A stretch of 57,415 nucleotides of DNA from Macrostomum lignano (Eukaryota), in assembly GCA_002269645.1 (NCBI GenBank), contig NIVC01003190.1, positions 1 through 57,415 on the forward strand, in the 5' to 3' direction. The translations under genes and the position numbers were made by a program. The notes beneath the pieces were generated by a model. That model did not search any database and was not told the DNA's origin. It was given only the letters and a program-made list of their open reading frames with translations. Shown in pieces: positions 4,338 through 55,879 of the stretch (position 1 is its first letter; the number at the start of each line of letters is the position of its first letter).

Positions 4338-6052
4338 TTGTAAATTAACGCGTAAAGAAAAATCATTTAGAAGAAAATTGTTATGAAAAATAGTTGACGA
4401 CAAGTTTAATGAGTATTTTATCAGTGTGGAATAGCCAAAAATATTACGCCATTAAAACAAAATAATAAGCAGATTTAATTTTGTATTATTTGTTCATGTG
4501 CTTTATGAGAAATTTTATTGAACCAGTATAATAAAGGAAAGGATTTCAAAGATAGATCTTATGTACTAAAAAATATCTTGTGTGTCTCTAGGTGTCTGTG
4601 TGATTGATTTCAGAAAAAATAACGGCTCAACCGATATTATTCAAACTTTTATGCTGATTTTATCTGACACTATCTGATCAAAGACTATTAGCACTACTGG
4701 GAATTCTTCCACAAACACAAGTCAAGGTGGTGCATAAATCCAACAGTAAATTTCACTAAGTGAAGGCTTGCTTTTGATTGAATTGAACGAATTAATAAAT
4801 GAAAATATACCACAATTGTACTACTTGCTAATGAAAATAATAAAAATGTCAAATTTTTTTATTAGCAACGAAGTTCAATCCTGACACATTTCCCAGTAAA
4901 TTTGTGAATCTCTCAAAAATTTAAAGGGATCGCTCATGTTCTTCTTATTGACGCCGTGTCCCTTCACTACCCACGCCTCGAAGACGGGTAGCGGGGTGCT
5001 CCTCTTGCCCAGCCCGCCTCCACCAGCATCAGTTGAGCCATCAATGGCCATCTCAACTTCCTCGACGTCGGCATCCTGAGCCGTAGTCTCGGCTCGTTCG
5101 TGTGACGTTGTCAGTTGAGGTAGCCCCTCAAGGGCCGTTTTAGCGGAATCAGTACCATTCTATAATAAGATGCGCGTTAAACCCGGCCGGTCGATCGATC
5201 GATCAATCGGTCCACTCAGCTTTAGATATGAGATTGTTAATTTAATGGTATCGTTCTCTAACGTCTGCTTAAAGTAATGCCCAAAGAACTTTAAACAACA
5301 TTGCGTGCGTTTGTAAAGCCTATGTACAATGCGATCGATAATTTCTGTTTTCAAGTTGGTTTTTCTCCCCAGCCAATAGAAAAGCCACGCATAAATTATT
5401 CTAGCCTGAAATTAAGCTCTCCTCGCGCACCCACCCCCAGCCCGCTCTTTATCAGTCCTGTCTGGCTGGGGCGCTCGGGTTAGGTTTCTGTTCTAGTTCT
5501 CCTCTCCCTTTCTGCCCTAGTCCCCCTAGTTCTTGTTTAGCTTCTGCCTAGCTGTCTGGCTGGTTCGATTTTGATTCTGTTCTAAACCACGCCTCTGCCA
5601 AGTCTCAGTCACGCCACCGCCACCGTCAATTCTCGACCACGCCACCTCTACTGTCTGCAACGGGTTCTCGCTACGAGTACCGCTACCAAACGATCACTGC
5701 CATCACATCATCGCGATTGCCTCAGGCTCATCGACTCGCTCTATCATCTATCATCTATCTTTTTGTTGCGGAGCCGCCCAATGCATTCCTTACGGATTCA
5801 GCAAATACTCCGGCCCATCTCTATTAACTACCCAGACGGAATAGATAATAACGAGCCCTAACCATCCACTCATACGGTTACAATAAATAAGAACTGCGGC
5901 CACCGCCCACATCATTCGCTACTATCATCAAGTGCTACCGCTACAAAATTTGCCTCTGCCATATTTGTCTTCGTCATTTAATTTCGAGTCTGCTGGTTGA
6001 TCGTCACAATTCGCTTCCTCGTTGGCTGCTAGTTGGTCGTTCCGTCATCTCC
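4338..6052 (-). pseudogene. Head-to-tail tandem duplicate of 6053-6857 (3' part of the giant gene's last exon plus downstream/3'-UTR sequence), interrupted by a solo LTR
   Basis: 4338-5100 plus 6014-6052 align to 6053-6857; the coding part reads ERAETTAQDADVEEVE...NMSDPF with a 15-nt in-frame deletion and loss of the original stop; the exon's splice acceptor (6921-6922) is not included in the copy. Confidence 0.88.
5101..6008. mobile_element. Solo LTR (908 bp)
   Basis: Ends TGTGACG...CGTCACA (7-bp inverted termini, TG...CA); flanked by GTTCG / ATTCG (5-bp TSD, 1 mismatch); the empty site GTTCG is visible in the paralogous copy near 6814; internal AATAAA at 5882. Confidence 0.85.
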
Positions 6053-6616: not shown

Positions 6617-6920
6617 TCAAAAGTTAAACGGATCGCTCATGTTCTTCTTATCGACGCCGTGTCCCTTCACTACCGCCTGGTGCGGGTCCCACGCCTCGAA
6701 GACGGGCAGGGGGGTGCTCCTCTCGCCCAGCACACCTCCACCAGCATCAGTTGAGCCATCGATGGCCGTTTCAACTTCCTCGACATCGGCATCTTGAGCC
6801 GTAGTCTCGGCCCGTTCGCTTCCTTGCTGGCTGCTAATTGGTCGTTCCGTCATCTCCTGGGCCTCGCGCTGCTCTGCTGAATCGCTGCCCGCGTTCACTG
6901 GATTAACCAGCTTCTTGGCG
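6617..6920 (-). CDS. Giant gene terminal exon: acidic cytoplasmic tail ending ...KKNMSDPFNF*
   Basis: Acceptor CACATTACAG at 6921; phase 2 matches donor CG|GTAAAT at 7665; in frame with ORF 6617-6898. Confidence 0.75.
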
Positions 6921-9900
6921 CTGTAATGTGATTTTCATAGGTATTTGGCTTTATACTGCTTTATGTGCTGTGTGAAAGCACTAAAACACGCTCACACAGA
7001 GTGTTCAGCGGCCCTGACTTTCTAATCGTCAGGAATGTACACCCTATGTAACTTTCTAATAGTCAGGAATGTACACCTATGTAACTTTCTAATCGTCAGG
7101 CATGTACACCTGTGTAACTTTCTAATCGTCAGGCATGTACACCCTGTGTAACTTTCTAATCGTCAGGCATGTACACCCTGTGTAACTTTCTAATCGTCAG
7201 GCATGTACACCCTGTGTAACTTTCTAATCGTCAGGCATGTACACCCTGTGTAACTTTTTTGGTTGGCTCTGATGAGTGTGAATCACGCGACAACCCTCAA
7301 CTAACCTTCGTGCACAAGCCCTAAATTCATGTAACCGCGCACGGAATCAAACCACGGGTCATGTGACGCAAGAGTTAGGCTCGTTTACATGTACCTCTGC
7401 TTTAATTTGCCTCGTATAAGTAGATCAGTGTCTGTAACAACTTACAACAACTACGATTATTATCTTAGTGGGGCCTGGAAAAAGTGAGATCCCAGACACA
7501 AACCTTAATATTTTGATTGTCAATTTAGCGCTGAAAACATAACTCTTTTTCCAAGAATATATGACCCCTTCTTCACTAGGAGCTACTGAAGCCCCGTCAC
7601 ACCCCTAGATCGCGAGTGAGTTAGCAGCCAAACTAAAACGTAAATCACTAGCGAAGCCATTTACCGTAGTCGGGATCTCAGCATCACCGCGCCAATGATG
7701 GCGCCGGCCAGCACGAGGGCGACACCCAAGGCGATAAGAGTCGGCACGAGCCAGTCCATCAGCGAGATTCCGGGCGGCGGTGTCTCGCAGTCGCCACCGG
7801 GCGGGCAGATGCAGGAGGCGCTGCCGTCGTCGCCAACTCTGCAGACCAGCGGCGGGTCGCAGCGAAGCAGCGCGCACGGGTCCGCGAGCTCGCAGCGGTC
7901 GCCCAGCCACCCGACGGGACAGCGGCACCAGTAGCCTTCGTAGCCGTCGGCCCGCCGCACGTCGCTGCAGTCGGGGTCCCACTCCGGTCCGCGACAGGTT
8001 CCGTTGTTCTGGCACGGCATCGCCAGCAGAGCCACGGTGACCTCCGCCGTGTCCGAGCCGCGCACCGAGCCGTTCAGCTCGAAGACGCCGGCGAACTCAA
8101 AGCTGAATCGGCCGTGGCCGCGGCCCTTTGGCCTGAACTCGTACACGTTAGTGAGCCACTTCGCCTCCTTGGGCAAGTTGTCAATTCCAGCTGGAGGCTG
8201 GGCGCTTGAGCTGAGCATAGACAGCTCGTGGCCGCCAGGACTTCTCAGACTTAGCTTGGCTGTCGCTCGGACTGAGGTGGCGCAGCTGATTGCGAACCTG
8301 ATGCCGCGCATGTCCGTCTCTTCTTGCTTTATCTGGACGCGGCAAAAGAGTAAAACATATTTTAACTCAAAAATGTACCATAAAACGGAAATAGCTTTCA
8401 AGAAAAACAAAGCCATTTCTTACCACCTCCCGCACCGGACCTTTCAGTGCGGTTCCGTCGCGTACAAAGTAAATATCGGTGCGGAACTGGCCGCCGCTCA
8501 CGCTGAGCTGGAAAACGCCGCGAGCTTGCTTCGCGGGGACCCCGGCTGGCGGCTGGTCCGTGACCACCAGCGGCAGGCTCTCCGTCCACTCCAGCTCGTC
8601 CACAGTGTAGCTCGGACGGTACACGAGCAGACCGTCCGCTGACAGGCTGGCCTGGCCGAACTTTGCGTCGCCTCGCAGCTCCCACACGACGGGATCGTCC
8701 TCTGGGTCCACGGCCAGCAGCTGCCGCTTGAATTCCACTGAAGATGGAGCATTTTTAAATAGATAAATGAGCATAAATGCGAAACATTTCACGGCGAGGC
8801 CCGGCCCTAGCGAAAAGTTTCTGGCTTGTGAGTACCATGTACTTTTATTGTTATTGGTGCACTACAAAAGTACAACACTGCTGACTCACCCACGACATCG
8901 TCACGAACTGTTAGCGATCCAGTGAGCTCCGATTGAATGACTGGTGCAGAGTTGAAAGGCTGCTTAGAGATGCTGCCCATAGCAAACATTCGCTCCTGAC
9001 CCAGGCTGACTGGAAGTCCCGCAGTTGCAGCCGTGTCGAACACTCCGGCCAGCTGCCAAAGCTGCTCATCTGAATGCATTTATAAATTTGCATGAGAATA
9101 TGTTTGTATCTAGTTCAATTAAACTTAATCCTAAGATTTGCATCCTCCGATAGTGCTTAAGATTGCTTCAAAGCTTAATTGCTGGGGGTTGTAGCCCAAT
9201 GGTTAGAGTGTCGGACCTACGACTGAAAGGTCAAGGGTTCGCTTCCCGACCCCACTGGGAACAATTTGTGTCCTTGAGCCAGACACTTAACTCTGGATTG
9301 CTTCCGTTCACCCAGCTGTAAAATGGGTGCCAGCATTAGCTGGGGTAATTGAGGGGGTGTGTGACGACCCCCCCCCCCCAGTCCTTGGACTGAACAGCCG
9401 TACGCAGCCTTCAGATGCGCCGCGAAGTAGCTATATGGTTGAGCTGCTTTTTACATTAATATTAATTCCTATTACTTCAAGGGTCATAAAAAATATTTCA
9501 AGAACCAAGCAATTACCCGCATCCCAATAAATAAGACTGTCAACAGTTTCATCCTCAGCTGCATCCCGACGAGTCCGTCGTTTTGCTGCATTTACTCCAG
9601 TCAGTTGCTGACTTCGTGCCACCTGCAGCTCGATGGTTGCTCTGCCGATTGGCGAGATCGCAAAGGTGGTGCCGAATTCGCGAATTCTTCGAGTCAAGAG
9701 GCGTCCTGTTCGGTGTTTAGTCCATTCTGGGTGCACGATGTACGGCTTGTAGTGAGACGCAGCCGATGAGTCATAGTCAGCCTTTGTTCGCTCGTCAGTG
9801 AGCTTCTCAAAGTACAGTGAGGTCCCGTTGGGATAGCTGCCAATGACTTTGACTTCGGGCATGTCGAGGCGGTCTGCATCTCTGAACTCCACCGGCAAGG

Positions 9901-12900
9901 CCTGTGTCTTCAGACTGGAGATTTGAAGCACAAGGGACTCATCAGGAACGATCGTCTGCTTGCTGAGCGTTCGGTTCGCGCATACGTAAGCCTTGGTGCA
10001 GGCGTGGAGCTTGATATAGATGGTCCTGAAGTTTAGAGAATATTATTTTTTACAGTGAAATCAAACTTAATGACTGTGTTGATGAGTAAGTAGTTCAGGC
10101 GTAATGACAAGTCTGTAAAGGCAAGTTTATTAATTATTAATCGACTCACTTTCCCGGCTCCAAGAAAAATCGGTTCCGCAACGATTCAACGGATGAGTTT
10201 CGGTTGAGACTCCCAAGGGTTATATTTTCGTCTGAGCCATCAAAATCGTTCCACTGAATAGTGTTATTTCGAATTTGAACGGTCACACCCGCGTCCGACT
10301 CGTTCATCTTTGGCGCAGGAATACACGGTAGAATGTCGTCGAGCCGGTCTTCTGCGCTGCTGATGCAGAACTCTGAAAAAGCAAAACCAAAAGCGTCAAC
10401 TGTATGCCATCATAAATTATTTAAATTGCTTGATTAAAATTGATGTCGAATAGAGAAAAGTACAACAACTCTAAGTTTGGGTTTGAAGGTTACCATAGTA
10501 CTCGACGCTCTTATCAAGATTAAACCGAAGTGTTGCCCCAACTACACTCTGATCGGTTTGCATCTTGGCATCCGGTGGAGACACTTCAAAGTCGAAGTCC
10601 TTAACGCCAACCAGGCTAGCGTTGATGTTGCCGAGTTCCGGTGGGTCGGTCATCACGGTCAGTCCGATCTTGTCGTAGTACGTTGTCGCGAGTCCTGCGT
10701 TATTTACAGATCGCACGCTGACGAAATACTTGCGGCCGTTAGTCAATACAAGCTGCGAGTTTGTGCCTGAAGGTAGCGCACCGACAGATGTCCAGGGCTG
10801 CAAGTCTGTGCCTTTTGGTGCACTGCCGATCGCCCAGAAATGTTCCTACAATTGAGGTAATTATGATCGGTACGTTTTCAACATCGCACCTGCTAAGTTT
10901 CGTTATTCAGAGCAGCTTACCATGATCAAGGACTCATTGTCGCTTATGATCCAAACTGCCCGAATTTCTGTAGTCGAGGCCGTGTAGTTTGTCGGCGCAT
11001 ACGGGTATGGAGCGGTGGGGTCATTATAGAATAGAGGTGCTTCATTGTCCACCTCAGGCGGTGTTGTATCAACAAGCTGCCCGGTGCTCAGAGACACAGC
11101 AGACTGACCATTTGCAAGTGTTGCTTTGACTAAAATATAAATGAAGTAAGGGGATCATTATTGAACTTAATAGCTCGTAATTGTATGCTTAAAAATTGAA
11201 AAGCAAAACTCACCCCCAAATTGGTATGTTTCGCCATCTTTCAATTTCAGCCCAGCTAGCATCAGTCGCACCTCTGTGAAGCCATTGTCTCTGCACTTGG
11301 GGTCGCAGTGCAGATAGTCGCAGTCGTGCAAGCAAGGTATGCAGGGCTTGTACAGAACCTGCCAGTCGGACACCTGAGTCTCATTCCAGAACACTGCGCC
11401 GCTGTAGGCAACGATGGGATTCGTGCCCGCAACGAAGGCGTTGCCGTAGCGACACTTCTCACTGGTTGGCTGGGGCAACCGCAGGTCCCTCAGCTTCACC
11501 ACCGAGCGCCAGCGATCGAGCACGTTGTCCGGATCGAGCGGCGGCACGAAGTTGGCCTTGGTGTGGGCTAGCAGGGTGACCCGAGCCTGCGGAATACTAG
11601 GCAGACCAGACACCACACCAAGCATAGCGCCATCAACCTCAACTCTGGCGGTCCATTCTCTATAGCCAGTGTCCTGGGCTATGCTAAAAAGTGCAAAGTG
11701 TAGTTGTGAAACTCCGCGCTGGGATCAAAGTCGAGCGAAATCAGCTCACGGACAGCCGGAAATGAGTTGTTGTCGTGAGTGCACCAGAGCAGAATAGCGG
11801 GACTGTCGGCTGGCTCGTATAGAATCTGTAATCCGCAGGCAGAGTGGATTCGGTTGATTTCATCAAAATCGCCTTGCAGAGTATCATCCGGCAGAGGCAG
11901 AGCATTCTCAATCAGCTTTGAGCCTGGGGCTCGTGTTGGTCTCGGGGTTGGTGGCGGCTGGCTGAGGTCCCTGCTCATATTTACCCTTAGGTAGTCCAAA
12001 AATTCCGGAGAGCATCCTTCGCAAAGATCGCTGCAGTTCGGAAATCGAATGGGGTCAGGGAAGACGCAGCAACTGCAGGTGTATTGAGACCAGTCTTCTT
12101 CAGGAACATAGTCGATGTCTCCAACTACGCCAGATGGGCCATTCCACAAAACCAGGCTGGTAACCACGCGACTGGAATTCGCCACCTGAGCTTTGAAGCT
12201 GTAGGAGGCACCAATGCCCAGATGTGAGTCCGCTTGTATGGCTCCAGATAGCACTCTTGCTGATGATAGATCGCGCTCCAGGTGCAGGTCCCAATCAGCA
12301 CCACCTTGACCAATTGGCGACGCCAAGTCATGGCGGAACCGCAAGCTCCACCACTCGTCCACATTCCAGAGCCCGGCTGTGTTAAGAGTTTGCCACTCAG
12401 TTCTACTGGGACTTCTGAGCGGGCAAGGATCAGCTGATGCCTTGGGGAAGTGCAGCAGCGTTGCGCGGAGGGAGTCAGACCTGCCGGAGTATTCTGCGTC
12501 CTCTGTAAAGTTCGAACCATCCGTGACGAAGCCCGCTGTTGGCATAGATATGTCCAGTAGGATTGGAGTTGTGCGGTGTCGTGTTATGAGCTCGGCTCGA
12601 TTTTCAGCCTCAATTGTTACAATATAGGGAACTCCAGGTTGCAGATCCAGATCTCGGAAGGTCACTTCGCTGATGGAAGCGGTGTCGTTGATTTTGACAG
12701 ATGCTTCCAGCCCAGTGATATCAGCGACCGCCGTGAGGTTCTTCAACTCGGATGGTGCACAGCCCTTTGCTCTCCAAAGTTGCAGCTTGATGTGCGACAG
12801 ACCTGAATCTGAGTCTTCGAAGCCTCGCCACTTGACATGCAGTGCGCCAGCCTCCAGAGAGAATGACAGTTTCTGAAAAGAGGGACTTAACACAGCCATC

Positions 12901-15900
12901 AGATGGTTTAACCGGAAATCAATTTAAGTTTGAGCTTACCATGTCGTAGAATGGACCAGCAGTGACTTCTCCCTTAGACGGCGGATTGTTGTCAAACATG
13001 AAGCTGGCGACTGTTCCGTTGCATTCTCCGGCCTCGTCCAAACCAATCACCATTGCGTAAAGAGTTTCCGCCTGCTCCAGCTCTAGATCTGTCAGCTTCA
13101 CCATTGTGTCTGTGCTCACCGAGCTTAGAGGATTCACGTTGAATGTGAAATTATACAGCTCACCTGTGCTATCTTTGTCGTACAGCTAAAAGATGAAGTT
13201 ATTTTAGTTTGAGTATAAGTATAATATTTAATAAAATTTGTGTATAATTCGCATGTACTTGTAATACGGACACTGAATTGCTTCTTGCACTCACAATTTC
13301 TTTGCAATCAAAATCGGATGGAATCGGCATATTTGAAATTCCTGTAAAGTAAGACACAATTTCCAGTTCCTGCTTTTCATTTAGAGCGGATGTAAACTTG
13401 TTCCATGAGTATCGCAGGTTGTAGTGTTCGGAATTTGATTCGGAAACTTCTGCCGCATTCGCAGTGCTGACAAACCGCGGGATATTGACATCCGCCTCTG
13501 GAATAAAAATAATTTTTATTTGCCATATACTGCAATAGCAGCAAATAGTTTTGATAAATGAATTGTTACAAACTTACTGAACACAGTCGAGTCATAGCCC
13601 ACTCTTATACCAGACGAAGTTACTTCGGCTGTAGCGAATCCTTTTGAGTAGGCGCGAACTGTGGCATAGTAGATTCCCTTGATGGGTACGAGGTCCAGAT
13701 CGTAAGCAGTAAAGGTCTTGTTCTGGCCCACATTAACAAACGGCAGTACGTTGTCTCTGGTCTTGGGATAGCGCCGGTCTGTTCCGAAAGCGACTTCATA
13801 GTAATCAATAGCCTGCCTCTGCCCGAGCTTGTCCACCGAATTCGAGCCTCCATTAGGATTAATCAGTATCGTATCGTTTCCGAAACCCATCCAGTTGCAG
13901 GAGAGCTGCGTGTAGGACTTCTGCTTGTGGAGGTCGATGCCTGCAATGGAGCCATCGAAGACGTGGCCTGGAATGATGGGCTCAAGGCGAATCACTACGC
14001 CGGATGAACGGACAGTGATGATGTGACTAGAGCAGTCGTGCCACTGACAATGGCAAAGTACGTCTCTCCGTTCTGCAAATTCAGTCCTGTGTGGCTGCCT
14101 CTTGTAAGCGCTGAAAATTGACAAACCGGAAAGATAGTTTTACTGCTTCCCTGGGAATCGAAGCAGGCAGTAAAAATGAGCAAAAATAATAAATTGGAAA
14201 AGAGAATAAAATTAATAATTGGAAATGGCAGCTTAATACGAGCGCACAAGCAATAACTTTTGCAGGAGGATTTGCGGAAACCCCAGCGCAACGTCTTTGG
14301 TGACATTGTCTCACTAAATTCACCTGCTGCCAGCTTTTGTGCACAAGCCTCAAATTAATGTGGCCGCGCAAATCGAACCGGGGGCGTGATGCGAGAGTCA
14401 AACGTGTTTATGGCTGAATTGCTCTGCCCCTGAGATGACAACTTACTCCCAACACTCGTGAAGTTCTGCACAACTAGGCCGTCAAGGCGCTCAAAGTAGA
14501 GCTGGTAGTCAATAACTGGACATGGCTCGCCGCTGAAATCCCACCAGGCACTCAGCTGCTCCACGCTTGTTTGGAAGTCCCTGAAAATCAAGATTGATTT
14601 TAAACAAATGCTTCATCTTTAAGTTGCGCATATTTGCATTCTAATGCACAAATAAAAATTCAATTTCCTCACATGTCCTTCCCCACGTGGTCACCATCGT
14701 TTATCGTGATGGGCTGATGAAATCCGAGGTCAGAACCTACTCTGCTGATGAAGACACCGCTGGAGATGACAGTGGAAAAGTGCTCAGCTCCGTTGTAGCC
14801 CTTCAGCACCGCGAACAGTCTCTTGTAAATGTCCAGTCGAATTCCAGTGAAAGTGTACGTGGTTGAGTCCGCAGGTATCGTCGTGAACTCCATCACCTGC
14901 GTTGCTCCGGGTGTGGTGCCCAGTCCTATCTCGTAGCTGAAGAAGATTGGTTTAATTGCTTAGTCTCTTCTAGGAAATTTTAACAAAGCTTTTAAGCTTT
15001 TGAGCTTTTAACAAACTCATTGCTCATCTTACCGAGATATACCACTCTCAGGATCCTGGAACGGAACCCAGGTCACAGCCAGAGTGTCCAAGCCAAGATG
15101 GCACGTGACGTCCATTTTCATGCAGCTTTCGGCATCGGTGCATTTGGAGCTGTCATGAGCTTGAATGGTACCGTTAATCAGTTGCACTCTGTCGGACAGC
15201 TCAACGATCACTGAGTGCTCAGGTGGTGTGTCATCGATGATGATTGCTTTGGAGTAAATCTTTGTTGAATATTTGACTTTGTTGTAGGCAATCAGAGTAA
15301 CAAAGTAGTTCTTGTTGTGCTCCATGATCGCTGCGAATTCGCTTGCTGTAAAGGCGCAAGGTGGTTTTCCAGCTGACCAACAGTTTTCTATGCTGGGGAA
15401 ATTTGGGTCAATTCCCCGTACACATAGCTAGCAACCTGCCTTGAGTCCCTAGCAGGAGCAAAAGGCTTGCTTGCCGCATGTAAATGAGTTCCTTAATCTG
15501 TGCTATATGACATGCTCCTGTCCATACTAAGCATGGCAAAGTGACAGTGCTGTCGAGAAGCTAAAGTTTTCTAATAAATTAGGGGTACGTCTCCAACAAG
15601 ATGTGATCTTTATGCTGAATTCCGAGGCATTCTTGCCCCGAAGAATCTCCGCGTCATAAGCAATATAAATAATTTTTGCTTACGGTGAACCGTGAACGAA
15701 GTCGCATCTCCGCTGACATTCTTGCCCAAAAGGATTTCCGCTCGCCCCTCAGCTTCGCCGATCATAATCGAATAGTAATCAATTTCACTCTCGGGGTCCC
15801 GGACATCGTCCCAGCTACAGGTAAGAGTGCTGAAAGACTGCATGAGAGATAGCGGTAAATAAAAACTAAGTCGCTCACAGAAATTATTGAAATAAAAAAT

Positions 15901-18900
15901 TCTACCTTCGTAAACTGCGGGCAGTGCAGAGTTCCCTCAGATGGCGGTGAGGAGTCGAATACTACTGCGGCAGAAGACGTAACGTTTTTCTGACCGAGCG
16001 AGTTCTCTACGATGGCTGTGAATATGTTGGGCTGTCCGTCGGGCAGCGGGTGCACCCTGTCATCCGCAGTGACTCCAGCCAGCTCTCGGGCTCCCAGATC
16101 GATTCTCTCACGCCGGAACATCGAATCCCCGTATGGATGCTCGCCGTACATTACCGAGGCGAATGCTGCTTCGCTCTCTGAGTCTCGGAACTCAAACTGG
16201 GCAGTGAGTGAGTCCACCGTCTCGGAATAAATCGAGGCAGCCGTTTCGATGGATCCGTCAGGCAATCCCAGGTTGGTGATTTTAACGAATGGTGGTGTCC
16301 GGTCTACAGTGATGCCATCAGAGCTGGCCTCTAGAATGTATCCAGCATTCGTCACGCCGCGAACTGTGCAGAAGTACTTTCGTCCATGCTCTAAACGGAT
16401 CGGTACCTGAGCGTGGCCAGCCGACGGAAGTCCTTCATGCTCCGCATCATCTGAGTTGACGAAATCTTCTTTTTCATCGTGCAGAACAATGCCGACGCGA
16501 GTGTATCGCTGCACATTCTCCGACATCGGCCGTGACCCGATCGCCCATTCATAGTGATTGATTCCGTAAAGAGGGCTTCGGAAGCCTTCAAACTGGCAAG
16601 TGAGCGATCGGGAGCTGGACTGGTACCTGGCATTCACTCTGGGTTCATCACCATCCATCAGATAGCCGGGGGTATCCTGGCCCACCACCATTATAGGCGT
16701 TGATGTCACCATGGCGCTTCTCAAACCGGCTCCGTTGATAGCGTAGGTACTCACATAGTAGACTGGAGTTCGAGTCTTGGTGTCTGTCTCATTCAGCTCA
16801 ACGTCAAGCGACAGCCTTCCAGAATTCAGCCGCGACATGCTTGTCCAATTAAGTATGTTCGCATACCCTATAATTTCACCAGGCTCGAAATAAGGATCCG
16901 AAACAAAACAACAAAACACCGAATTTTAACTTGAAAAAAATCGGATTCTTACCAGGTTGATCTCCCACTGCCACAAAGTACTCGTAAATGTTGGACTCCG
17001 GATCCTCTGCGTGCCACCAGCCCTTGATTCCTGTCCTGTCCGCCTGTCGCACATATCCGCCCTGAGCTTGCTCCAGCTCTCCGGGCGAGACGTCCACCTT
17101 CACCCAGTACATAACTGGAGGTGTGTTGTCAATGATTACTCCATTGGTCTCTTGCACCTGCCTTAGGAGGGCTCCGTTTTGGCCGACAATCTTAACAAAG
17201 TAGCGACCTCCTAATTTGAGCCGCAAGTTACTGTGCTCAATGTGGGTAGTATTGGGCAGAAGTTCGTGACTCCAGTCATGCTCTTTTACTAAAATTTTAA
17301 AATATTAGTCCAAAGTTTAGAAAACATGTTTCGTATTTTAGACTAATGGTCTTAATTTTATACAGCTTAAAAACATGTTTAGAGTCTTACCTGGGTAGAT
17401 TTGGTGCTTCGTTCCGTGCGATTGCTCAAAAATCTGGTAGCGATAATGCGTGACTCCAGACTCTGGGTCGTTGTAGTCCCAGTTCGCCGAAATTGTGTCC
17501 AAGGAAGACTGGTACTCGACATCTTTGGTAACGTCGAGTCCATCGTACAGCCGGTTTACAACTGGCTTAGTCAGATCGATCAGAACACCTGATGTTGCCG
17601 TAATGTTAGAGTTTTCTGCCCTGTTGGTAACCTGAATCTGAACTCTGACCAAGTCTTTGTGCAGGAAATGGAAATGATTCCACTGAATGCTGGTCTGATT
17701 AGGCTGCAGCATTCTTCCTGTTTTTGCTGAAACCCATTCTCCAAGTCCAGGATTGAACTTCTGCACGGTCACGACGAATTCCTTGATGTCGGACTCAGGG
17801 TCAGAAAATCCTTTCCACTGGGCGCTTACAGAGGCTGCATTTGAGGAGTACTCAAGATCGGAGAAGTCCGAGGCCAGACCGTCAACAATTTCTCCAACAA
17901 TGGGATAAGTGAGGTCGCAAAGTATGCCACTGCTTGATGCGTTCACTGACAGCTCCCTGTGGCCGTAGTGCACTGCCGTGATGACACTGCGATAGCGCGT
18001 GTTGTGCTGCAGCTCCTGGCCGCCAGCGAGGCTCGAATCCATGCACAGCATTTGCTTGTGGCTGTCAACAAATTCAACCCGATATATCTCATCGTCTTCC
18101 TGGAACAGCTGCCAATGGTAGTACGCGATTCCTGACTCGTCGTCTCTGAAGTCGAACCAATTGACGCACATGCGGTCCGATTTTCCAACAAAATCGGCGT
18201 CGTGCTTGAATTCGCTGCCGTCTAGCACGGGGCCAGCGATTGGTGGCGACAGATCGATCAAAATGGGCCGGTCAGCGTGCTGCACTGTGCTGAGATTTAC
18301 GCTGTTTTCAGCTCGCAGGATGACCCACACCGGCACGCCGTCTGGCAGTCTGTGGGTCATGGCAAACGAGTCAGCGAACTCTAGTACGTCCTTCTCAAAC
18401 TCAGGAGTACCCATGAAGGGCATGGGTCGGAATTCTAAAATCATGGTGTCGAATTTCGTACGCCCCAAGCCAATGTCGAATTCCTTGATTCCTGAGTGCG
18501 GATCTCTGAAATTTTAAAACAGAATTGTTTGTGTTACAATGTAAGTGCGTTTAGCATTGACAGAAACGATTAATTCGGCAGAAAATAAAAAAGGCGCTCA
18601 CGAAAAGTTGTAGTGACCGGTGAGCTCTAAAATTTCGTCTTCGAACGTTATGTCTGTTAGGTGATGAACCAGAGGCGGCGAGTTATCGACTACAATGGGC
18701 CTCCAGTGGCACAGCGTGAGCGTCATCGGACCACCAAATTCGACCTTGTTCGTTGCCCTCACTGTTGAGTAGTACTTCCCATCCGGGAGACCGTTCTCTT
18801 TGTAAGCAGGGTTGGGGATCGGGTGTATACTGCCGATGTGGGTCCACTGTGATTCGTGACCCAGGTGAGCATGCGGATCTCCGTAGCCCAGGCTGATGTC

Positions 18901-21900
18901 TGTACCGCATACATCCGTTCCTGCCGCCCAGGTGATGCCGAAAATTGAAGTCTCATTGTCGTGCAAGCCATCCCAGTTGGCCGACATGAATTCATTGGCG
19001 CGAGTCCACCTGACATCTATCAGGCGGTCGTGTCCATTGAATAATGTCGTTGAGCCTCTGCCATCGATGATCCTTCGGTGGTTGTTCAGATCCGTTTCAA
19101 ACTCTGTGCGAACAACATTGTTAGCGTCCTGCGGCTTCACTGGACCGCACCTGTCCCACCACTTTTTAATGATCTTTTCTCGGCACACTGTGTAAACTAT
19201 TTCTACAAGGGATGCATTCGCGATAAAGCCTGGGTGAGGCGGGTCGAAGTCTGTCAAAATCGGCTGCGACGATAAAATTGAAGAATAGCCCAGGATGTTT
19301 TTAACGAACAGATTGACAAAGTGAATGTTATTGTGCTGCAGAGTGAAGCCACTCTGAAAAAAGTTCACAGAGTGCCCAACTGATTTCCGTTCGTAGTAGG
19401 CAAAGCTGTCACTCTCGGATAGTTTCAAGCGATGCCCCACAATGTCGTGTGTCAGTTCGCAAACTTTGTTGACCGCTGGAAAAGAAAAAGTTAAATGAAA
19501 AATTTTCACTTGCAGAGTTGTGCGCTTTGCTAAATCAACTACTTACAGTGGTAGTTGAAGGCTCTGCACTTGTCGCCCTGCTTAAGGCAATCTTCAGCGC
19601 AGAGAAAACTGACGTGAATGTTGGTCCTGGTCAGATAAACTCCGCTGGCAAGGCGGCCATGCTTTGGCGCAGAGAAATGGTTCAAATGGTAGCCGTCTGA
19701 AAGTTGATAATAAAATATGAATATAGCCTTAGTGCTCATTATACTCGTCCTACTCTATGAATATCGTTGTTTAAAAAGTTTACCATTAATGTTGTCATCC
19801 TTGTTCAGGTCTAGCTTCTTCCAGAAGGTGTGGCTCTCTCCACCCGCATCGACACCCAGCCCGACTGCGACTTTGGTATCAATTATCTCCGAGTCATCGC
19901 TCGCTACTACAAAAGCAGACAGAACTTTGGTATTGCTGGTGCTCCTAAAGTCTTCTTGGACTCGGCCTCGCGGCAAGGTTGTATCGTAGGTGGGAAGATC
20001 GCAGGTAGCATGAATTGTATCTCCTTGATTATTAGAGACATGCACCGTGAAATAGAGAGGTATGCTGTGCGGAAGAACCTGCATAGGAATTGTATAATTT
20101 TTGTCAGCGTGCTGTGTACGAGAGAGAAGAATCGGGCATAAAATATGTATAACAACGCACCCGGGCAATGATTGCAGATGGTCCTTTAAATTCATCATGT
20201 CGGACAATATCGGTCAAGCCCTTTGCCGTGCCAACGCTGTAGGTCATTTTCAATACGCTGACATCGTCCTCGGCCTGAATCTCGAGCAGGAAGGCCGGAT
20301 CCATGACGTCTCTGCCTCGCAGCTGCAGAACTCTGCAATGTCGAGTTTCCCTGCCGACAGCAAAGGCACTGTCCGGTGTTGATTCCATTTCGGTGATCCG
20401 CGGTGGCGTGTCGTCCGGCTTGCCTGTCCGCACGTTCAGGATGTTTTTCGAAATCTTCGGAGCAGAGTACTTCCAGATGGCAGCTTTGAAGAATACTTTT
20501 CTGAAGTCAAAAGTTTATTTGAGATGAAACATACTTTTGGCGCTGTAGCCACTGACGTCTACTTTTTCAATCAGTCCCATAGTTTCAGCCAACGCTCTAA
20601 TCTATGCATAGCTTCCTAATTCTGTACAGGCGTCTGCTTGCCAACGATCACGCTCAAGGTAAAGGAGTTACCAATACAATATTTTTACCTGATTCTTATG
20701 AACTTCAGGTTCAACTCGAGCTTCACAATAGCATCCAGTTGTAGTCGCAGAGGAACCAATTCTACATCCAACGTGAGTCCAACGTCCAGAGGAAACTTGC
20801 TGAATCCGATCTCAGCCCTGGTTGGGAAACGGGTCTCCATGATGTATCCCGTCAGTTCTGCTCCGCCGCAAAGGAAGAAGCAGATGTACACGCCACCGAC
20901 AGCCTATAGAAAAAATTTAAAGATTAGTAGGCGAAATATTAAAAAATTGAGCGAAACATTGTAAAAATCTAGTCGTACTTTGGCTCCGAGCTTCGGTGTG
21001 GCCGTTGCTGCGGCGGTCATTGACAATATCTTTAGCTCAAGCTTTATTTCGATCGTAAAGAATCCACCGGCACTGAAGTAAAACGTTACAGGCACGAAGC
21101 CACCAATAACAAAAGTCCACGATTCAGTGAAGAACGTAACGTATTGATCATATAGAGTAAATTTTCCGCTTAAAGTGATGTCAAATGACTTGAAAAGTTC
21201 GCTGTTAAATCCTCCTGAGATGGCTGTATCAAATAACTCTTCGATCTGGAAGTTTAGGCATCATAATATTTGCAACATGCAGTTCAGCAGAAAGACAAAT
21301 ATATGGAAATATAGGGAAATATTTCCCTAAACGTAAAGTTCTTACCATTTGAGTTACAAGCAAGGAAAAATCTTTCACTAGAAGATAAACCTCCAGCGGG
21401 TCGACATTCTTAGTGTTTATTAACGCGGCGAGATCAAAGACTGTCATATTTCCTATCAAGTACGCCAAATCTGCAAGTCCCTGTTTGGAAAATCCCTGTC
21501 CAGGTACGTACACACCGCCCTGCAGTGCATTTCCTGCGTTGGATGAAGCCTTGAGAAGCACGGCGCGAATGTGCTCAACACCCTTCTTGAAGTTTGTCTC
21601 GAGATCTTCTCCACCGATTTGAATTGCAAACCTGTGCGGATTCATGCGAAGCATGGCTCCAGTACGAATGGAACTTCCTGCGCTGTCGCGCAAGTCCTGC
21701 TGAACTCGCTTGTCATCCTCGGGTGACGGCATGCTGATTCCCAAGCTAGCCGCTTTGCGCATTACTATTTCCTGCATGCGCTGATTCACTGCTTCAAAGC
21801 CCAGGTGAGACCACTGTTCCAGTAAGTCTGACTGGCCGCTGACATCTCTGAGCATTTCAGTTACCGGATCCATCTGGTCGTTCATGCCAGTGTTGAAGCC

Positions 21901-24900
21901 TTGCGCTGCCGGAGACGGAGCAGCTTGGCTTCTCTTGTTCCGACTGTGTAGCTCGGACACGTACGGGTACTGCTGCTGACCGTTGAAACTCTCCTCTATA
22001 ATGCTGTTATCGTCAAGGTCGGGACTGGTCCAGTTTCCTCTAAACTTGCTCTGGCAGCCAGGAGGAACCGGAACGAGAGTCATGTTTACTACCTGGTACT
22101 CAAACTGATTGGCACTTGCAGACTCAGGCAAAGTAAAATAGAAGTGCAGATCCACCTGATAGGCAACTATATCATCTCCTTGAATCGGCTCCCACAGCCC
22201 AGGCACAATGGTGGGTGACGTGGCGGTCACAGCGCTCATGTAAAGATCCACAGATATTCGCTCCGTGATGTGGATATTCAAAGTTCTTCCGAAATGAAAG
22301 CCCGATAGTGAAGAGTTTAAGACGAAATTCTCAAATCCAACCTTCAGTGTATCGTTGCATGGATCGAGGTCAAAAGTAAAGAAAAAATCTCGTTTAGCTA
22401 CGTCAAGGTCGATTTCTATGCAGCATTTGATGCCAAGACAGTCGAGATTGAAGGAACACTTTGCGTCTCGATTTCTCCACAAAACGCTGTCGTTGAAGTG
22501 CGGGCAGTAGGGCGCCGGCGTCAAAATTTCGCGCTCAACAATTTGCGTTTGGTTTTCGTAGCATGTAGCGTTTGGATAGGGTGGAGCGGGAGTCGATACC
22601 GATGAGTTGTCGATGGAGCCGTTGCATGGAACTTCAACTTCAACTATGACAGTTTCGTTAACGTACTCCCTTAGCGGATATTCATCAATGGCGCACTGGC
22701 TTGACCTCAGCAGATCAGGGGACACTTTCAGTCTGTTGATAATCAAACCGCTTTCAACATCCGCCTGAGACGGGTACAGGTAAGTTCCGTTGGACAAGCA
22801 CACTGGGAACTCAAAGTTCATGTTGTTCAGGATGTCAGCTTCCATTTCACATTTGCCTAGCACACCAGCATGATCTGTGCAGAGTGATGCCGTCAGGTTC
22901 AAGATCACATGCTTGTTGTCGGGCGTTCGAGTCATTCTGTATGAAGCAGACATCCACGGACCAAACCTGAACGTTCTATGCTCGTACCACAGATCCCTTT
23001 CCAATAGTTCCTTTGAAATTGTTTGCCGCTCAAATTGATAGTTAAAGATCATCGAGCAGGGTTCAACGTACAGCTCCGAGCGGAAAGACCAGTTGCCGAC
23101 ACTCAAGTTGACAGGCAAGCAGCAGCTCACCCCGACGCAGCCTTCGGTGAACTGGCACTGAACACCCGGTGACATTGGAGGCATTGTGAGATGCGGGCAG
23201 CTGTGCTGTGGGATGCTATTAAAGTTGCACGGGTAGCTGTGCAGCAGTGTTAGCACCGTGGCATTGTCAGCCTCTGTCAGCCCCATGCGGTTCAGTAGCA
23301 GGCTGTTCGCTCTGGAGTATGTTCCGTTATTAACGTAGATCTCTTCATCCGGCCACATGAAGCCAACGTCACTGCTTTGAGTGCACAGTGGTATCTTCAT
23401 CCAGAAGGTGTCTAGTATGTTGTACCTTATAGTATCGCTTCCTACACCGATCAGCAAATCCAAGGACATAACAAACTCTTTGTAGTCGGAGGCAAGCTGC
23501 AGTTGATACTCCAACTGCACTGCTCTGCCTACTTGTTCTGTGTGCTTAGTCTCGAAATTGTATCCCAACAGCGTCTTGTTCATGCTCCACCGCTCGAATC
23601 CCAGCGACAGTTGCAGAGTACACGGCTCAACGAACATCCAAAGCTTGAAGCTATGCTTTGTTATCTTAAGATCTATTGTGTAGCAGCACTCCATGCCTGT
23701 ACAAGACTTGGTTGGTGTGCAGCGCAGATCAGCGGTGTCCGTCTCATTTCTGACGTGATCTCGACACCAAGATTCCCAAATAGATTTTTGCAGATAGTCC
23801 ACCTCGCACTGCTGGTGTACATGTCATCGAACTGAAGTCCCAGTCTATTAAGGATCAGAGTGCTCGGCACCTTGTTAAGGTCGTCCGGATTGTCCACAGG
23901 AGGCCAGATGAGTTTGCCACTGTCGCAGATCGGTAGGTAGAAGAAAGTAGGCTGCATTACTGGCATTGGTGCTTGGCAAGCTTCGCCTTCTTCGAGACAC
24001 AGAATGTAGCCGGCAGATATCAGGGCGCCGCTGCCGGAGAAGTGGCTGTTTACCTCGTAGTACAGCTTCAAAGTTGGAGACACGGCGACTTCGTGCGGTT
24101 TGTCTGCATTGGTAATAATTCAAAGTATTTTTTGTTTAAATAATTCACAATTCAGTTACTTGACACAAACAAAGATAACCTTACCGAACTCTAGAGTTAG
24201 AAACGAAGCGGTGACGTGCCACTTTTCAAAGGTGATTGTAAATTCAAACTGGCAAACGTCGATAAAAACGCTGATATGGAACGATCGGGACACTACCATG
24301 AGGTCCATGTTCTGGCAGCACACAGCTCCGACACAGCTTGACTGCAGGACGCACATTGATCTGGGATCTGCAGCCTGAACATTGACTTTGTCTCCAAACG
24401 GGCACTGTGACTTATCGGGAATCACGAGAGAGGAGTTGTAGCACTGCCTGTCCATGAGAGTGGCCGGTTCGATTTTCAGCCGGTTTACTATCAAACCGCT
24501 CACCGTGTCGACTTGGTTGGGCGACGGTACTAAAATTTCAGATTAGTATGCATAAAATTTTATTACATGAAGCCAGAAACCAGTCAGACTCTAATTAATT
24601 TTTTACCTCCAGGCCAGATCAACGTTCCGTTAATGCAGGCCGTAATGGACAGGTGCAAGTCTGTCAACACTGGAACACTATAGCAAGCTGTTTTGAGCGG
24701 GCAAACCCAAAGCTCCAGATTAAAAATGAGGTCCTTCATCTCATTGGCTAGGCCGAGTGTGTACACCAGTTTTACATTCTCCCCGATGGAGTGCTCTGTC
24801 TTTCTGGCCCATTCGAATCCCAGCAAAGATCGATTGAAGGACCACTTCTCAAACGTAAGCGCCAGTTCGTACGTGCACGGGTTCACATCGATAGAAGTTT

Positions 24901-27900
24901 TAAATGCCACTTCGGCGACCTTCAAGTTGACCAGTGAGCAGCAGTCAAGGCCGGTGCAAATGCCGATGGCAGAGCAGCTGACCTCACGCGAGTCGGGCGC
25001 AGACACGTGCGGGCACTGGACACTGGCTTGTCCAAGGTCGGACTTCTGGCACTGTCGCTCTCTAAGCAGGCCGATGTCCATTCCGAGCTGAGTCGCCACG
25101 ATGCCGCTGACTCCGCGGTCAACATTCGACCATTCAAGCCTGGAGCCGTCCAAACAGACGGGAACCGGGAACTCCTGATCGTGAAGAATATTCGCTACTC
25201 GATTGCAATCGTTGGCATCGCAGTACTCAAGCGACATGCCTACTATGAAGCTTTGCAGTTGTTGCGCTTTTGCCACCTTGAATCGCAGGGTGAGCTGGTC
25301 GCCGATCTTCTGCTGCTGCTCTTCATTCCATCCAGTAAAATTCATGAGAGTGCCATTCAGATACCAGCGCTCAAAGCCAACTGAATACGTGTAGGTACAA
25401 GGATCGAACTGAATCCAGGTGGAGAAGCTCCTATTGAGCAGCTTGTAGTCCACTAGCTGGCAGCACTCAACTCCTAGGCAGCCGGGTGCCAGGCCACAAG
25501 TTGTGAATTCTGGCAAGGCAGGCACATTAGCGTGTGAGCAAGTCACATTTCTGCTCAAAATTTCGTTCACTACGCATTGACGATCCGCCAGGAAGTTCGG
25601 GGACAGCTTCAGCCGGTTAGCGATAAGACCTCTTGTGGCCTCTTCGACAGATTTGGCATGACCGGCCGCGTTTACTGAAATTACAAATTCAGTTATTATC
25701 AAATTCCTGATAAGTAATAGCTTCAAAGTACAAAGGAACTACAATACGGCTCACATTCAGGCCACACGAGTCCTGATGCTCCGCAGGCTGGAATGGGTAT
25801 CACTGCCATATCAAGCAGCTTGATGTCGAATGTACACTGGAAGTCGTAGCAAAACTCTACTGACAGCGTGGCCAACAGCTGACCGTCGGATGCTCGGCCA
25901 TATTCGAAATTGACTGACAGCGAGTTGCCAATCTTCTCCTTGTAGCTGCGACCTATGAATTTTTAGACAGTTGGTTTAAGCCTTTTTGAGCACACAGTTC
26001 TGTCGCAAATCGTCATATGAATAGTCTCACCGATATGATTAAGAAGACTAATGTTGAACTTCCAGTTTTCAAAGCCAGTTTCGAACCGCAGACCGCACGG
26101 GTCGATCTCGAGCCAGACGTGGAATTGCTTTTTAAACGATAGCAGCTGCAGGTCGACACAGCAATCCATTTCCAGACAGTCGTCGCTAATTCTGCACTTG
26201 GCGCCCTCAGGAAGATGCGGAGGCACAGTGAAATGCGGACAGTTCTTTCTTGACACCGCGGCCGAAGTGACGATTGAGCAGTTCTCAGGTTTGAACACGC
26301 CTGGAGGGATGTTCAACCGCTTCAGCGCTATCTCAGCGGCATTGTCCCAGATCTTGCTGCCGTCGACCTTATCAAAGTCCCCTAAGAGTGTAAAAATAAT
26401 TTTTTCGTAAATCCATTTTCTTCTGTTACCCCTTGTAGAGTGTTCTACCTCCCGTTAAAAAAGGAAAAAAGAAGATAATCGTATAATACTACTATAAGTA
26501 AGTAAGTACACGCATGTGCGCCTAAGCTTTGAATGAATCACGCTACCAGAAAAAGATGTTACCAGAATAATACGCCATGAGCCATTTTCCCCTTTTAGCG
26601 CAACACGTGAATTGTCATGATACTTGAGTTGCCGATGCATTTCGTCCATTTGCATTAGGACATCGTCAGGGTCTTTTTATTGAACGTGTTGACCCACCCG
26701 ATTCTGAAAAATGAAAGATCTCTTCAGAATTTTTTGAGAACTTATGTCAAGCCGCATGTGAGCCCTGAGATTTTTAAGGTGATTGTCCCAAATGGTAGCC
26801 AACCTGGACAACTGTATGGTCTGTGCAAAGTTCATAAGGATGGTCATCCTTTAAGACCAATTGTTTCGATGATCAACACTTCAGAGTATGAGCTAGCCAA
26901 ATTCCTTGACAATTTAATTAAACCTGTTATTCCTTCTGAGCACTGTGTGGGATCCAATAAACAGTTTATTGAGAGCCTCAGCAATACCACGATTAATCAA
27001 ACTGACAGGCTTTATAGCTTTGATGTTGTTTCACTGTTCACCAACATCCCTCTCGATTTCACCATTGAGCTGGCTGCTGATCTTGTGTATGAAAAAACCG
27101 ATCCACCTCCTTTCTCCAAAGCCACTTTTAAGAAGATGCTCAAATTCGCCACCTCCGGCATCTTTCTTTTTCGGGACAAATATTACAGACAGATTGATGG
27201 GTGTGCCATGGGCAGCCCTCTCGCCCCAACCCTCGCTAATTTATGCATGGCCCACTGGGAGAAGGACTGGATGGCCCTCCCTTGTGCGCCTCACTTCTAC
27301 AAACGCTACGTCGATGACACGTTTGCGATCTTTGAGGACGAAGCTAAGAAGGACGAGTTTTTTAAGTTAATCAATTCTACTCATGAGAATATCAAATTCA
27401 CGGCGGAGGGGGGAGGCAGGAGACTTCCTTTCTTAGACATTGACGTTGACGCCACCGATGAAACTATTTCGACCAGCGTGTATAGGAAACCTAGCTTTAC
27501 CGGGCTTATGCTTAGGTTTGACGCCTTGTGCCCTAGACAATGGAAAACCGGATTGATTCGTTGCTTTCTTCACCGGGCTTTTTCCACTTGCAGCTCTTGG
27601 AGACTTTTCCACAACGAAGTTGAAATCCTCACCAATCTGCTCAGCTACAATGGCTATCCTAAGAACTTTGTGATGAAAATTGTCAACTCTTTTCTCAATG
27701 ACAAACTGACTGAACCTAATCGGATGAAAGTTCGTGATTCCACCTCTGAATGTCCCTTGATCACTTTGCCTTACTTTGGTGTTTGTTCTATAGAGTTTAA
27801 AAAGAAGTTAGAAAAGCTGCTCCGTAAAGACTTAAACACTCAAATCCGTGTTGTGTTTCGCACCGAAAAGATTGCTAAGTTTGTCTGCAAGTTGAAATCC

Positions 27901-54700: not shown

Positions 54701-54806
54701 ATAAATGATTTTTATTGTTTAAGTTCTAATTTGATACTTTAATGTCCTTTCTCATCAGCATGCAAAAACCAAATACAGCTGCAACAATTCCAAATAAAAC
54801 CAACAG

Positions 54807-55879
54807 ACCTTCAAGCCCCAGAAGAAGTACAAGGAGGGCACACTTCGCCACCAGCTGCACAAGAACGCTATGGCGTCTCTCAGCGCCGGCATCGATCTGA
54901 AAACTGCGGTGCAGCTGCCGCAGGGCGAGGATCTCAACGATTGGCTTGCAGTGCACGCTGTGGACTTCTACAACCGGGTGAATCTGATCTACGGCACGGT
55001 GGCGGAGGAGTGCACGGAGGTCAGCTGCCCCAAGATGAGCGGCGGCTCCAAGTACGAGTACCAGTGGGCTGACAAGGGCCAGTACAAGAAGCCGACCTCC
55101 CTGCCTGCCAGGGAGTACATCCACCTGCTCATGGACTGGGTTGAGACGCAGATCAGCGACGAGGAACTTTTCCCCACCGACTCCAGCCGGCCGTTTCCCA
55201 AGACCTACTTGGCCAGCGTTAAGAAGATTTTCACTCGCTTATTTCGAGTCTTTGTTCACGTCTATATTCACCACTTTGAGCACCTGGTGTCTGTTGGCGC
55301 CGTGAGTACTTGGGCGTTCAATTTCGGACATCTGGTATCAAGCGTTGCCTTCATTGACATAAGTTGTGCCGGCCATCCCAAGCTGCTTGACACTAGGGAG
55401 TGGCTCCCCAAACCCTACCCAAGGCAGTTCGTTCCCTCACTAACTGTGTTAACTGTTGACACTTTTACCTAAAAGCTCAGCCACATTAATTTGGGCCTCG
55501 TGCGCATCAATTGGCCTGGGGGTTTGTCGTGTGATTTCCGCCTGTGTGAAAGTCAAGGCCATTGAACACTCCGTGTGGATGCGTGCTTGCGTACAAACCA
55601 CCGTGTTCACGTTTGACATCGTTTGAAACGTACTTTATTGAACTTTCAACAATAATTATTTTTCAGGAAGCTCACGTGAATACCTGCTACAAGCACTTTT
55701 TCTACTTTGTGAACGAGTTCGCTCTGGTGGACAAGAAGGAACTGGAGCCGTTGGTGAGTCCTCATGTTTGACTGACAGGCGGAGCTATCTGCACTTATCC
55801 TGCTGTCCAGTAAATTGAACGAAACAAACATATGCGGTCTTAATTGCAGAAGGACATGACCATGAGAATGTGCCGGTAA
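54807..55879 (+). CDS. MOB3: MOB kinase activator 3-like; exons 54807-55301, 55667-55753, 55850-55879 (first coding exon not identified)
   Basis: [64 protein letters not shown]...[14 protein letters not shown]...[11 protein letters not shown]...ELEPL-KDMT. DWxAVHxVDFxNRxNLIYGT and YEYxWxD...YKKP indicate the MOB3 clade. GT-AG phase-0 introns; in-frame TAA upstream of acceptor CAACAG (54806). Confidence 0.92.
55484..55591 (+). mobile_element. SINE family B-related fragment in a MOB3 intron
   Basis: CATTAATTTGGGCC...GAAAGTCAAGGCCATTGAACACTCCGTGTG is reverse-complementary to motifs at 6987-7020 and 34510. Confidence 0.45.

Follow-up and report, generated by a model that had tools for sequence, protein, structure and literature searches.

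A GH16-like domain without catalytic glutamates is looped out of a single fibronectin type III-like repeat in a giant flatworm surface protein

Does a glycosidase fold lie embedded in an animal membrane protein and, if so, is it still an enzyme, a decaying remnant, or a module turned to another use? The question is raised by a locus on the minus strand of a 57,415-nucleotide stretch of DNA from the flatworm Macrostomum lignano (contig NIVC01003190.1, assembly GCA_002269645.1; the whole stretch is called the window below), where open stretches are linked by GT..AG introns and the sequence is eukaryotic. A first-pass annotation, made from the letters of the sequence, had placed a degenerate domain resembling glycoside hydrolase family 16 (GH16) at 11600-12400, inserted in an array of fibronectin type III (FN3) repeats. 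The motifs to which it appealed are present on the minus strand: FDPSAEFHNYTLHF at 11729-11688; VDG at 11637-11629, in the next frame relative to FDPSAEFHNYTLHF; D-I-D-Y-V at precisely 12119-12105; and a Cys/Pro-rich stretch (CSCC...PPPTPRPT) within ~12098-11913, a segment of low model confidence. The proposed location was right but the extent too short, the beta-jelly roll occupying ~12422-11464 and the whole nested unit 12542-11056.

Results

Evidence for a GH16-type fold

We searched the window protein as two pieces joined by X at a frame break (described below), leaving the sequence unmended. The 397-residue open frame gave no match at E ≤ 1e-3 in a word-indexed protein search, and Pfam scans of the window protein returned CBM_6 alone, at a subthreshold E of 0.04-0.2 that we treat as chance, while NCBIfam returned nothing. 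A GH5 xyloglucanase and an esterase, which appeared at E ~1 in a single-sequence phmmer search against the PDB, were also rejected as chance. A full HMMER scan of protein representatives with the window protein yielded 58 homologs with 25-33% identity, and the homologous region of 21 of these was aligned with the window protein to give a family alignment of 22 sequences. The profile built from this alignment had 15 matches in the PDB at E ≤ 10, every one of them a GH16 protein, led by the beta-glucanase 3wvj (4.8e-7), Bacillus lichenases (6e-5), and kappa-carrageenase (0.06). The match consists of two collinear stretches, which pair profile positions 54-141 with lichenase 18-101 and 260-327 with lichenase 129-187. 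When the family was compared with lichenase by hhalign, using a reference sequence verified to be identical to 1MAC/1BYH, the E value was 5.5e-6, and 1.9e-10 after deletion of a variable insert.

Predicted structures point in the same direction. An AlphaFold2 model of the window protein, computed on the 22-sequence alignment, reached a mean predicted local distance difference test score (pLDDT) of 82.5 and a predicted template modeling score (pTM) of 0.76, with low confidence in the insert alone. The 50 best Foldseek matches of this model in the PDB were all GH16 proteins (carrageenase, lichenase, laminarinase, agarase, and porphyranase), with E values down to 1.7e-9 and target-normalized template modeling (TM) scores up to 0.72. 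A second model, of an intact hemichordate homolog (pLDDT 81.5), matched lichenases at E ~1e-10 and TM 0.75-0.77, and its 50 best Foldseek matches were again all GH16. Across both models, the lowest Foldseek E value was 7.7e-11 and the highest target-normalized TM score 0.77, and LamG or pentraxin-type domains were absent from the best 50 PDB matches of either.

It could be argued that the likeness to GH16 is a chance match, or that it reflects a generic concanavalin-A-like (LamG) fold, given that the single window sequence has no significant match in any library and that the Pfam GH16 model (PF00722) stays below its curated threshold, with no match in the window protein and weak ones in 4 of the 22 relatives (best E 0.005). 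However, the top matches are GH16 and nothing else in profile, profile-profile, and structure searches alike, which makes such an explanation extremely improbable. The first-pass annotation had itself named a fold other than a jelly roll, or matches to generic LamG alone, as outcomes that would speak against it; what the family profile, hhalign, and Foldseek on two models return is a beta-jelly roll with GH16-specific matches.

Loss of the catalytic residues and position of the catalytic strand

The GH16 catalytic motif, E-[ILV]-D-[IVAF]-[VILMF](0,1)-E, was found at none of the candidate positions, whether in the window protein (GDIDYV, SKLIEN, and CGLQILY) or in the family (G-D-[FI]-[DN], the poorly modeled W-x-I-V-E-D, and G-x-Q-x-H). 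Glu is conserved in none of the columns of the 22-sequence alignment, which argues that the domain is not an enzyme, whichever register holds. The Glu-Asp-Glu catalytic residues are gone in every relative compared, and the loss of the glutamates proposed by the first-pass annotation is thereby borne out.

As for the register, hhalign, run with the full alignment and with three versions that carried different deletions, placed the lichenase catalytic strand at three sites, with low confidence and similar scores. Since sequence methods were undecided, we relied on the order of strands in the models. D-I-D-Y-V, which had been taken for the equivalent of the catalytic strand, is probably not that, since GVVGDIDYV forms isolated bridges alone and no regular strand in either model; the PWxIVED stretch is modeled as coil at low pLDDT, and the hemichordate protein is no exception. 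Between the VVTSLVLW and ELISLD strands, whose lichenase counterparts are FFTYTG and EKVISLG, both models contain exactly two long regular strands, which form a beta-hairpin, ACGLQILY/AILLWCT (residues 235-255; 11778-11840, minus strand), and in lichenase the same flanking strands enclose the catalytic strand and the strand after it. By strand order, this hairpin is the probable counterpart of those two strands, with ACGLQILY (11840-11817) probably equivalent to the catalytic strand itself. Covariation of Cys236 and Cys254 across the hairpin is weakly supportive (both cysteines in 8 sequences, neither in 9, a mixed state in 5). The Cys/Pro-rich insertion had been described as following the catalytic-strand equivalent; it is present, but would precede it, because the hairpin occupies the place of the catalytic strand.

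Several residues are strongly conserved among the 22 sequences, namely, Gly237 and Trp253 (22 each), Asp142 and Trp133 (19 each), Gln239 (17), Arg255 (15), and His241 (10). Judging by the alternation of hydrophobic and polar side chains, Gly237, Gln239, His241, Trp253, and Arg255 should point away from the core and onto the concave face of the jelly roll. The retention of Asp142, together with Asp, Asn, or Glu at position 144 in 18 of the 22 sequences, might be taken to indicate an active glycosidase or transglycosylase with noncanonical residues, for instance, Asp142 and Asp/Asn144. However, there is no conserved acid/base partner, the Asp142 segment is not modeled as a central strand, and we know of no retaining GH16 enzyme that does without the two glutamates, so that continued catalysis by such residues is very unlikely. 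Taken together, the domain has, with high probability, a GH16-type fold without catalytic function.

Nesting inside one FN3-like repeat

The first-pass annotation is supported in that the neighbors of the domain appear to be of FN3 type: the Pfam fn3 model is passed in homologs, with 49.2 bits in amphioxus and 39.3 bits in a crinoid, the crinoid match being the repeat directly before the nested domain (the window repeat directly upstream scores 14.3 bits against a cutoff of 25). The domain is not inserted between repeats, however, but inside one of them: its ~320 residues are looped out of a single FN3-like repeat, between the early strand of that repeat and its DPESGI-type loop.

Nearly the whole nested unit, together with the preceding FN3-like repeat, is encoded by one exon at 11214-12873 on the minus strand, with the acceptor ...cttttcag|AAACTG at 12874/12873 and the donor G|gtgagt after 11214; public gene models agree on this splicing. 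The N-terminal part of the host repeat (PTAGFVTDGSNFTEDAEYSGRSDSLRATLLHFPKASADP; 12426-12542) has modeled strands at residues 6-8 and 24-32, and BLASTP aligns the stretch PTAGFVTDGSNFTEDAEYSGRSDSL with the beginnings of three ordinary repeats in the exon at 17341-18513 (E values of 7e-6, 0.007, and 0.007). The chain leaves the repeat after the invariant Cys40 (12425-12423), runs through the jelly roll at ~41-360, and re-enters the repeat at the invariant Cys364. The first half of the jelly roll (residues 41-148; 12099-12422; pLDDT 85-94), which ends with VVTSLVLWNGPSGVVGDIDYVPE, is the counterpart of lichenase 18-98 in the hidden Markov model (HMM) alignment. It is followed by the variable insertion, Cys-rich and then Pro/Thr-rich (residues 149-210; 11913-12098), where pLDDT falls below 50 at residues 149-164 and 173-210. 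This insertion forms the loop that connects strand VVTSLVLW of the jelly roll to the catalytic-strand equivalent, and homologs carry in its place either CxCC...CxCxC with a Thr-rich linker or no cysteines at all.

Beyond the hairpin, HMM and hhalign alignments to lichenase 129-187 identify FDPSAEFHNYTLHF (11688-11729) as the counterpart of the GH16 motif FDASKGFHTYAFDW. The second half of the jelly roll (residues 287-360; 11464-11685; pLDDT 86-96) contains ...REWTARVEVDG, AMLGVVSGL, ARVTLLAHT, and RSVVKLRDLRL, which align with YIKWYVDG, VLKHTATA, GKIMMNLWN, and the C-terminal strand of lichenase. The part returning into the host repeat (11214-11454; strands at 377-386, 395-398, and 423-430) comprises CRYGNAFVAGTNPIVAYSGAVF, where ordinary repeats have their DPESGI..Y..AiG stretch; a five-Cys cluster (PCIPCLHDCDYLHCDPKC); and the strand FTEVRLMLAGL...ETYQFG. 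In the family alignment, C364, C401, C404, C413, and C417 are invariant. The host repeat is split by an 84-nt GT..AG intron at 11213-11130 and completed at the start of the next exon, whose splice is confirmed by public models and which supplies its last strands (VKATLANGQSAVSLSTGQLVDTTPP; 11056-11129) and the usual ending ...VDTTPP; the VKATLANGQSAVSLSTGQLVDTTPP part matches the ends of ordinary repeats weakly in BLASTP (E 0.08-0.11). Nesting inside one repeat follows from the match of the N-terminal part to ordinary repeat starts and from the family alignment, which runs on into the repeat after the insert. As regards a putative seven-strand beta-sandwich built from the two separated halves of the host repeat, strands are predicted with high pLDDT in each half in the two models.

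An intact and conserved domain behind a frame break

Apart from a single frame break, the 1.66-kb exon at 11214-12873 is open. The break, numbered frameshift 4 in the first-pass annotation, is real in this window: it falls in a T5 run at 11686-11690, with two spare bases at 11687-11686. An intron was ruled out, as no GT..AG is possible there. The break amounts to a one-base difference in the length of the T run, however, and is read through in a second M. lignano assembly (NIVC01001044.1), whose sequence agrees at 99.1% over 7.8 kb but shows T6 at this site; the public proteins P0059 and P0061 likewise read HFFSIAQ through it.

The break at 11686-11687, together with two one-base deletions in C runs of the same exon in NIVC01001044.1, could suggest a decaying remnant in a pseudogene. 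Against this, the two M. lignano sequences differ in length at 12 sites in 7.8 kb (11686-11690, 12447, 12629, and nine more between 7075 and 14636), and all of these differences are single-base, fall in exons and introns alike, and mostly lie in or adjoin short runs of the same base. Moreover, the other assembly and two public proteins are intact across the site, the remainder of the exon is open, and the domain is conserved across eight phyla. Intact copies of the domain therefore exist, a pseudogene is very improbable, and the simplest reading of the frame break is a long-read consensus error rather than decay of the domain. "Degenerate," as the domain had been called, thus applies to its catalytic residues but not to the domain as a whole, which has been kept from sponge to amphioxus. 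The public models P0001 and P0060 bridge breaks by inventing very short introns or by skipping segments, and P0001 omits FDPSAEFHNYTLHF altogether; the GH16-like domain is thus partly hidden in public gene models because of single-base assembly errors.

The homologs belong to Porifera, Platyhelminthes, Annelida, Nemertea, Mollusca, Echinodermata, Hemichordata, and Cephalochordata, and the whole nested unit is conserved across these eight animal phyla, that is, over several hundred million years. Source names, looked up for 30 of the 58 homolog clusters, include the sponge Oscarella, the flatworm Macrostomum, the annelid Owenia, the nemertean Lineus, the molluscs Potamilus, Mya, Haliotis, and Elysia, the crinoid Anneissia, the hemichordates Saccoglossus, Ptychodera, and Glandiceps, and several Branchiostoma species (amphioxus); no vertebrate, arthropod, or nematode was among these 30. 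Most named homologs are entered as uncharacterized or hypothetical proteins, a few have rule-based domain names, and some bear the names HEG1, CRB1, or NCAN by transfer. The likeness of HEG1, CRB1, and NCAN to the amphioxus relatives is limited to the C-terminal EGF-like domains, transmembrane segment, and tail, and these proteins have neither this FN3 array nor the GH16-like domain; the transferred names are no evidence of orthology. In searches of the literature, we found no account of the family.

The host gene and its surroundings

The gene that carries the domain extends at least over 6620-25675 on the minus strand, as delimited by tblastn of the public model P0061 and by exon translations. 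P0061 (UniRef A0A1I8J0A4; 5,603 residues) is the longest public model, and its residues 396-5603 map to 25675-6620 with 95-100% identity; the HMMER scan with the window protein also recovered a 98%-identical M. lignano protein. The host is a single-pass membrane protein of ~5,600 residues, in which Cys-rich modules without a Pfam match are followed by a long FN3-like array where the motif D-P-E-S-G-I recurs; next come a cadherin-like domain and EGF-like domains, and then one transmembrane segment and a tail. The GH16-like domain is located in its membrane-proximal third.

The Cys-rich module, of ~100 residues and with the pattern C..C.G..CC ... DPC ... FE.W, occurs in many copies over 21232-43311 on the minus strand (for example, at 24587-25738, 36976-37260, 39493-39783, and 42994-43311), and the copies at 21.4-25.7 kb, at least, are part of the giant gene (P0061 residues 396-1752). 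Amid the upstream Cys-rich modules, at 38738-39431, lies a 15-bp tandem repeat (GGCGCCAGCACCAAA) of 46 copies with 99% matches, open in all frames. At the 3' end, two open stretches on the minus strand, 6620-6934 and 4878-5159, are very alike (…SERAETTAQDADVEEVE.AIDGSTDAGGG…KGHGV.KKNMSDPF.F); the coding sequence of the giant gene ends in the former, an exon for the cytoplasmic tail, and the latter looks like a nearby duplicate of that exon. A tandem array at 7017-7257 (34 bp) sits between the last two coding exons, and further arrays are found at 144-427 (18 bp), 48996-49772 (41 bp), 50470-51314 (24/48/72 bp), and 56417-57402 (35 bp).

Elsewhere in the window, a 423-residue open stretch on the minus strand (43342-44610) has a subthreshold match to Peptidase_M23 (E 0.006, 17 bits against a cutoff of 28.7) that is probably due to chance. 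A 224-residue open frame on the plus strand (54798-55469) has a Pfam match to the Mob1/phocein family (E 2.3e-60) and represents a neighboring gene unrelated to the GH16-like domain.

Discussion

The domain has lost its catalytic residues, yet it persists from sponge to amphioxus, and its probable role is that of a binding module. The explanation that best covers the observations, to which we assign a probability of roughly 0.55, is that a dead, GH16-derived jelly roll, set in an FN3-like repeat, has had its cleft turned to glycan binding in an adhesion or sensing receptor. The catalytically dead jelly roll is carried outside the cell on an FN3 stalk, and the old substrate cleft would now offer a putative binding surface for an extracellular polysaccharide or a glycoprotein glycan. 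The floor of this cleft may be formed by Trp133 on the neighboring strand and by the hairpin, in which Gly237 and Trp253 are invariant and Gln239, His241, and Arg255 are conserved for the most part, while the Cys-rich, mucin-like loop would hang beside it and the host protein would act in adhesion or sensing. Glycan binding by the domain, taken by itself, is a reasonable if tentative inference from analogy, insect GH16 homologs without catalytic glutamates being glucan-binding immune receptors and not enzymes (PMC6403176).

Several points weigh against this explanation. The alignments behind both models contain just 20-22 sequences, and the cleft geometry and residue equivalences are based on strand order and side-chain alternation rather than on superposition. 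In our reading of the profile alignment, the polar residues with which lichenase holds its substrate (E63, R65, and N26) are not conserved in the family. Furthermore, where the consensus has His241, Arg255, and the WN-motif Trp, the window copy carries Leu, Thr, and His, so that several of the conserved putative cleft residues are gone from it. The lost lichenase contacts and the departures of the flatworm copy from the consensus therefore make a serious rival of the idea that the jelly roll binds no carbohydrate and instead mediates contacts between proteins or has a purely architectural role, like many concanavalin-A-like domains of matrix receptors, and the adhesion-type modules of the host (FN3, cadherin-like, and EGF) would suit such a role. 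On the other hand, the residues presumed to line the cleft face (Gly, Gln, His, Trp, Arg, and Trp) are typical of sugar-binding surfaces, and the nearest precedent for a dead GH16 domain is a glycan receptor; we consider a role without carbohydrate binding unlikely, though worth keeping in view beside the glycan-binding receptor that we favor.

How does this domain compare with known systems? Bacterial GH16 endo-glucanases (lichenases 1MAC/1U0A/3O5S/3WVJ, laminarinases, and kappa-carrageenases) have the same beta-jelly-roll fold and strand order, and they share with the family, in the same order, the motifs YxLxxKAAxxxGxVSSFxxY, FDxSxxFHxY, and VDG and the WN strand. In contrast to them, the present family lacks Glu-x-Asp-x-Glu, has ~10% identity and stays below the Pfam GH16 threshold, carries a Cys/Thr/Pro-rich loop of 60-100 residues before the catalytic-strand equivalent, and has its domain embedded in an animal membrane protein. 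The beta-1,3-glucan recognition proteins (GNBP/LGBP) are likewise extracellular animal proteins of GH16 type without the catalytic glutamates. They are, however, soluble proteins of ~50 kDa, often with an N-terminal glucan-binding domain, which are recognizable by PF00722 and cluster with animal beta-1,3-glucanases, whereas the domain described here lies within an FN3 repeat of a ~5,600-residue membrane protein and is far more divergent. Pfam found no match to CBM39 in the window exons or in full-length relatives.

With respect to the nested arrangement, a parallel is offered by the insulin receptor family, whose FnIII-2 domain has a long, largely disordered insert with a cleavage site. That insert is likewise looped out between FN3 strands of a surface receptor, but in the present case the insert is a complete folded jelly roll. 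Dead GH16 domains have already been recognized in arthropod immunity, where they serve as soluble sensors of glucans; what is new is their nested, membrane-anchored setting in an unstudied and widespread family. It is tempting to go further and to propose that an ancient animal receptor family reads environmental or self polysaccharides through a membrane-anchored dead GH16 domain, independently of the arthropod beta-glucan recognition proteins. We regard this as a doubtful extension for now; its ligands may be microbial or algal glucans and galactans, or glycans of egg coats or mucus.

A practical lesson is that single-base assembly errors at this locus lead to invented micro-introns, which mask parts of the domain in public models. 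If the domain does bind a glycan, it would represent an old and separate route by which animal cells read surface polysaccharides, and it would provide a handle on a large uncharacterized protein family in Macrostomum lignano, an animal in which RNA interference and transgenesis are available.

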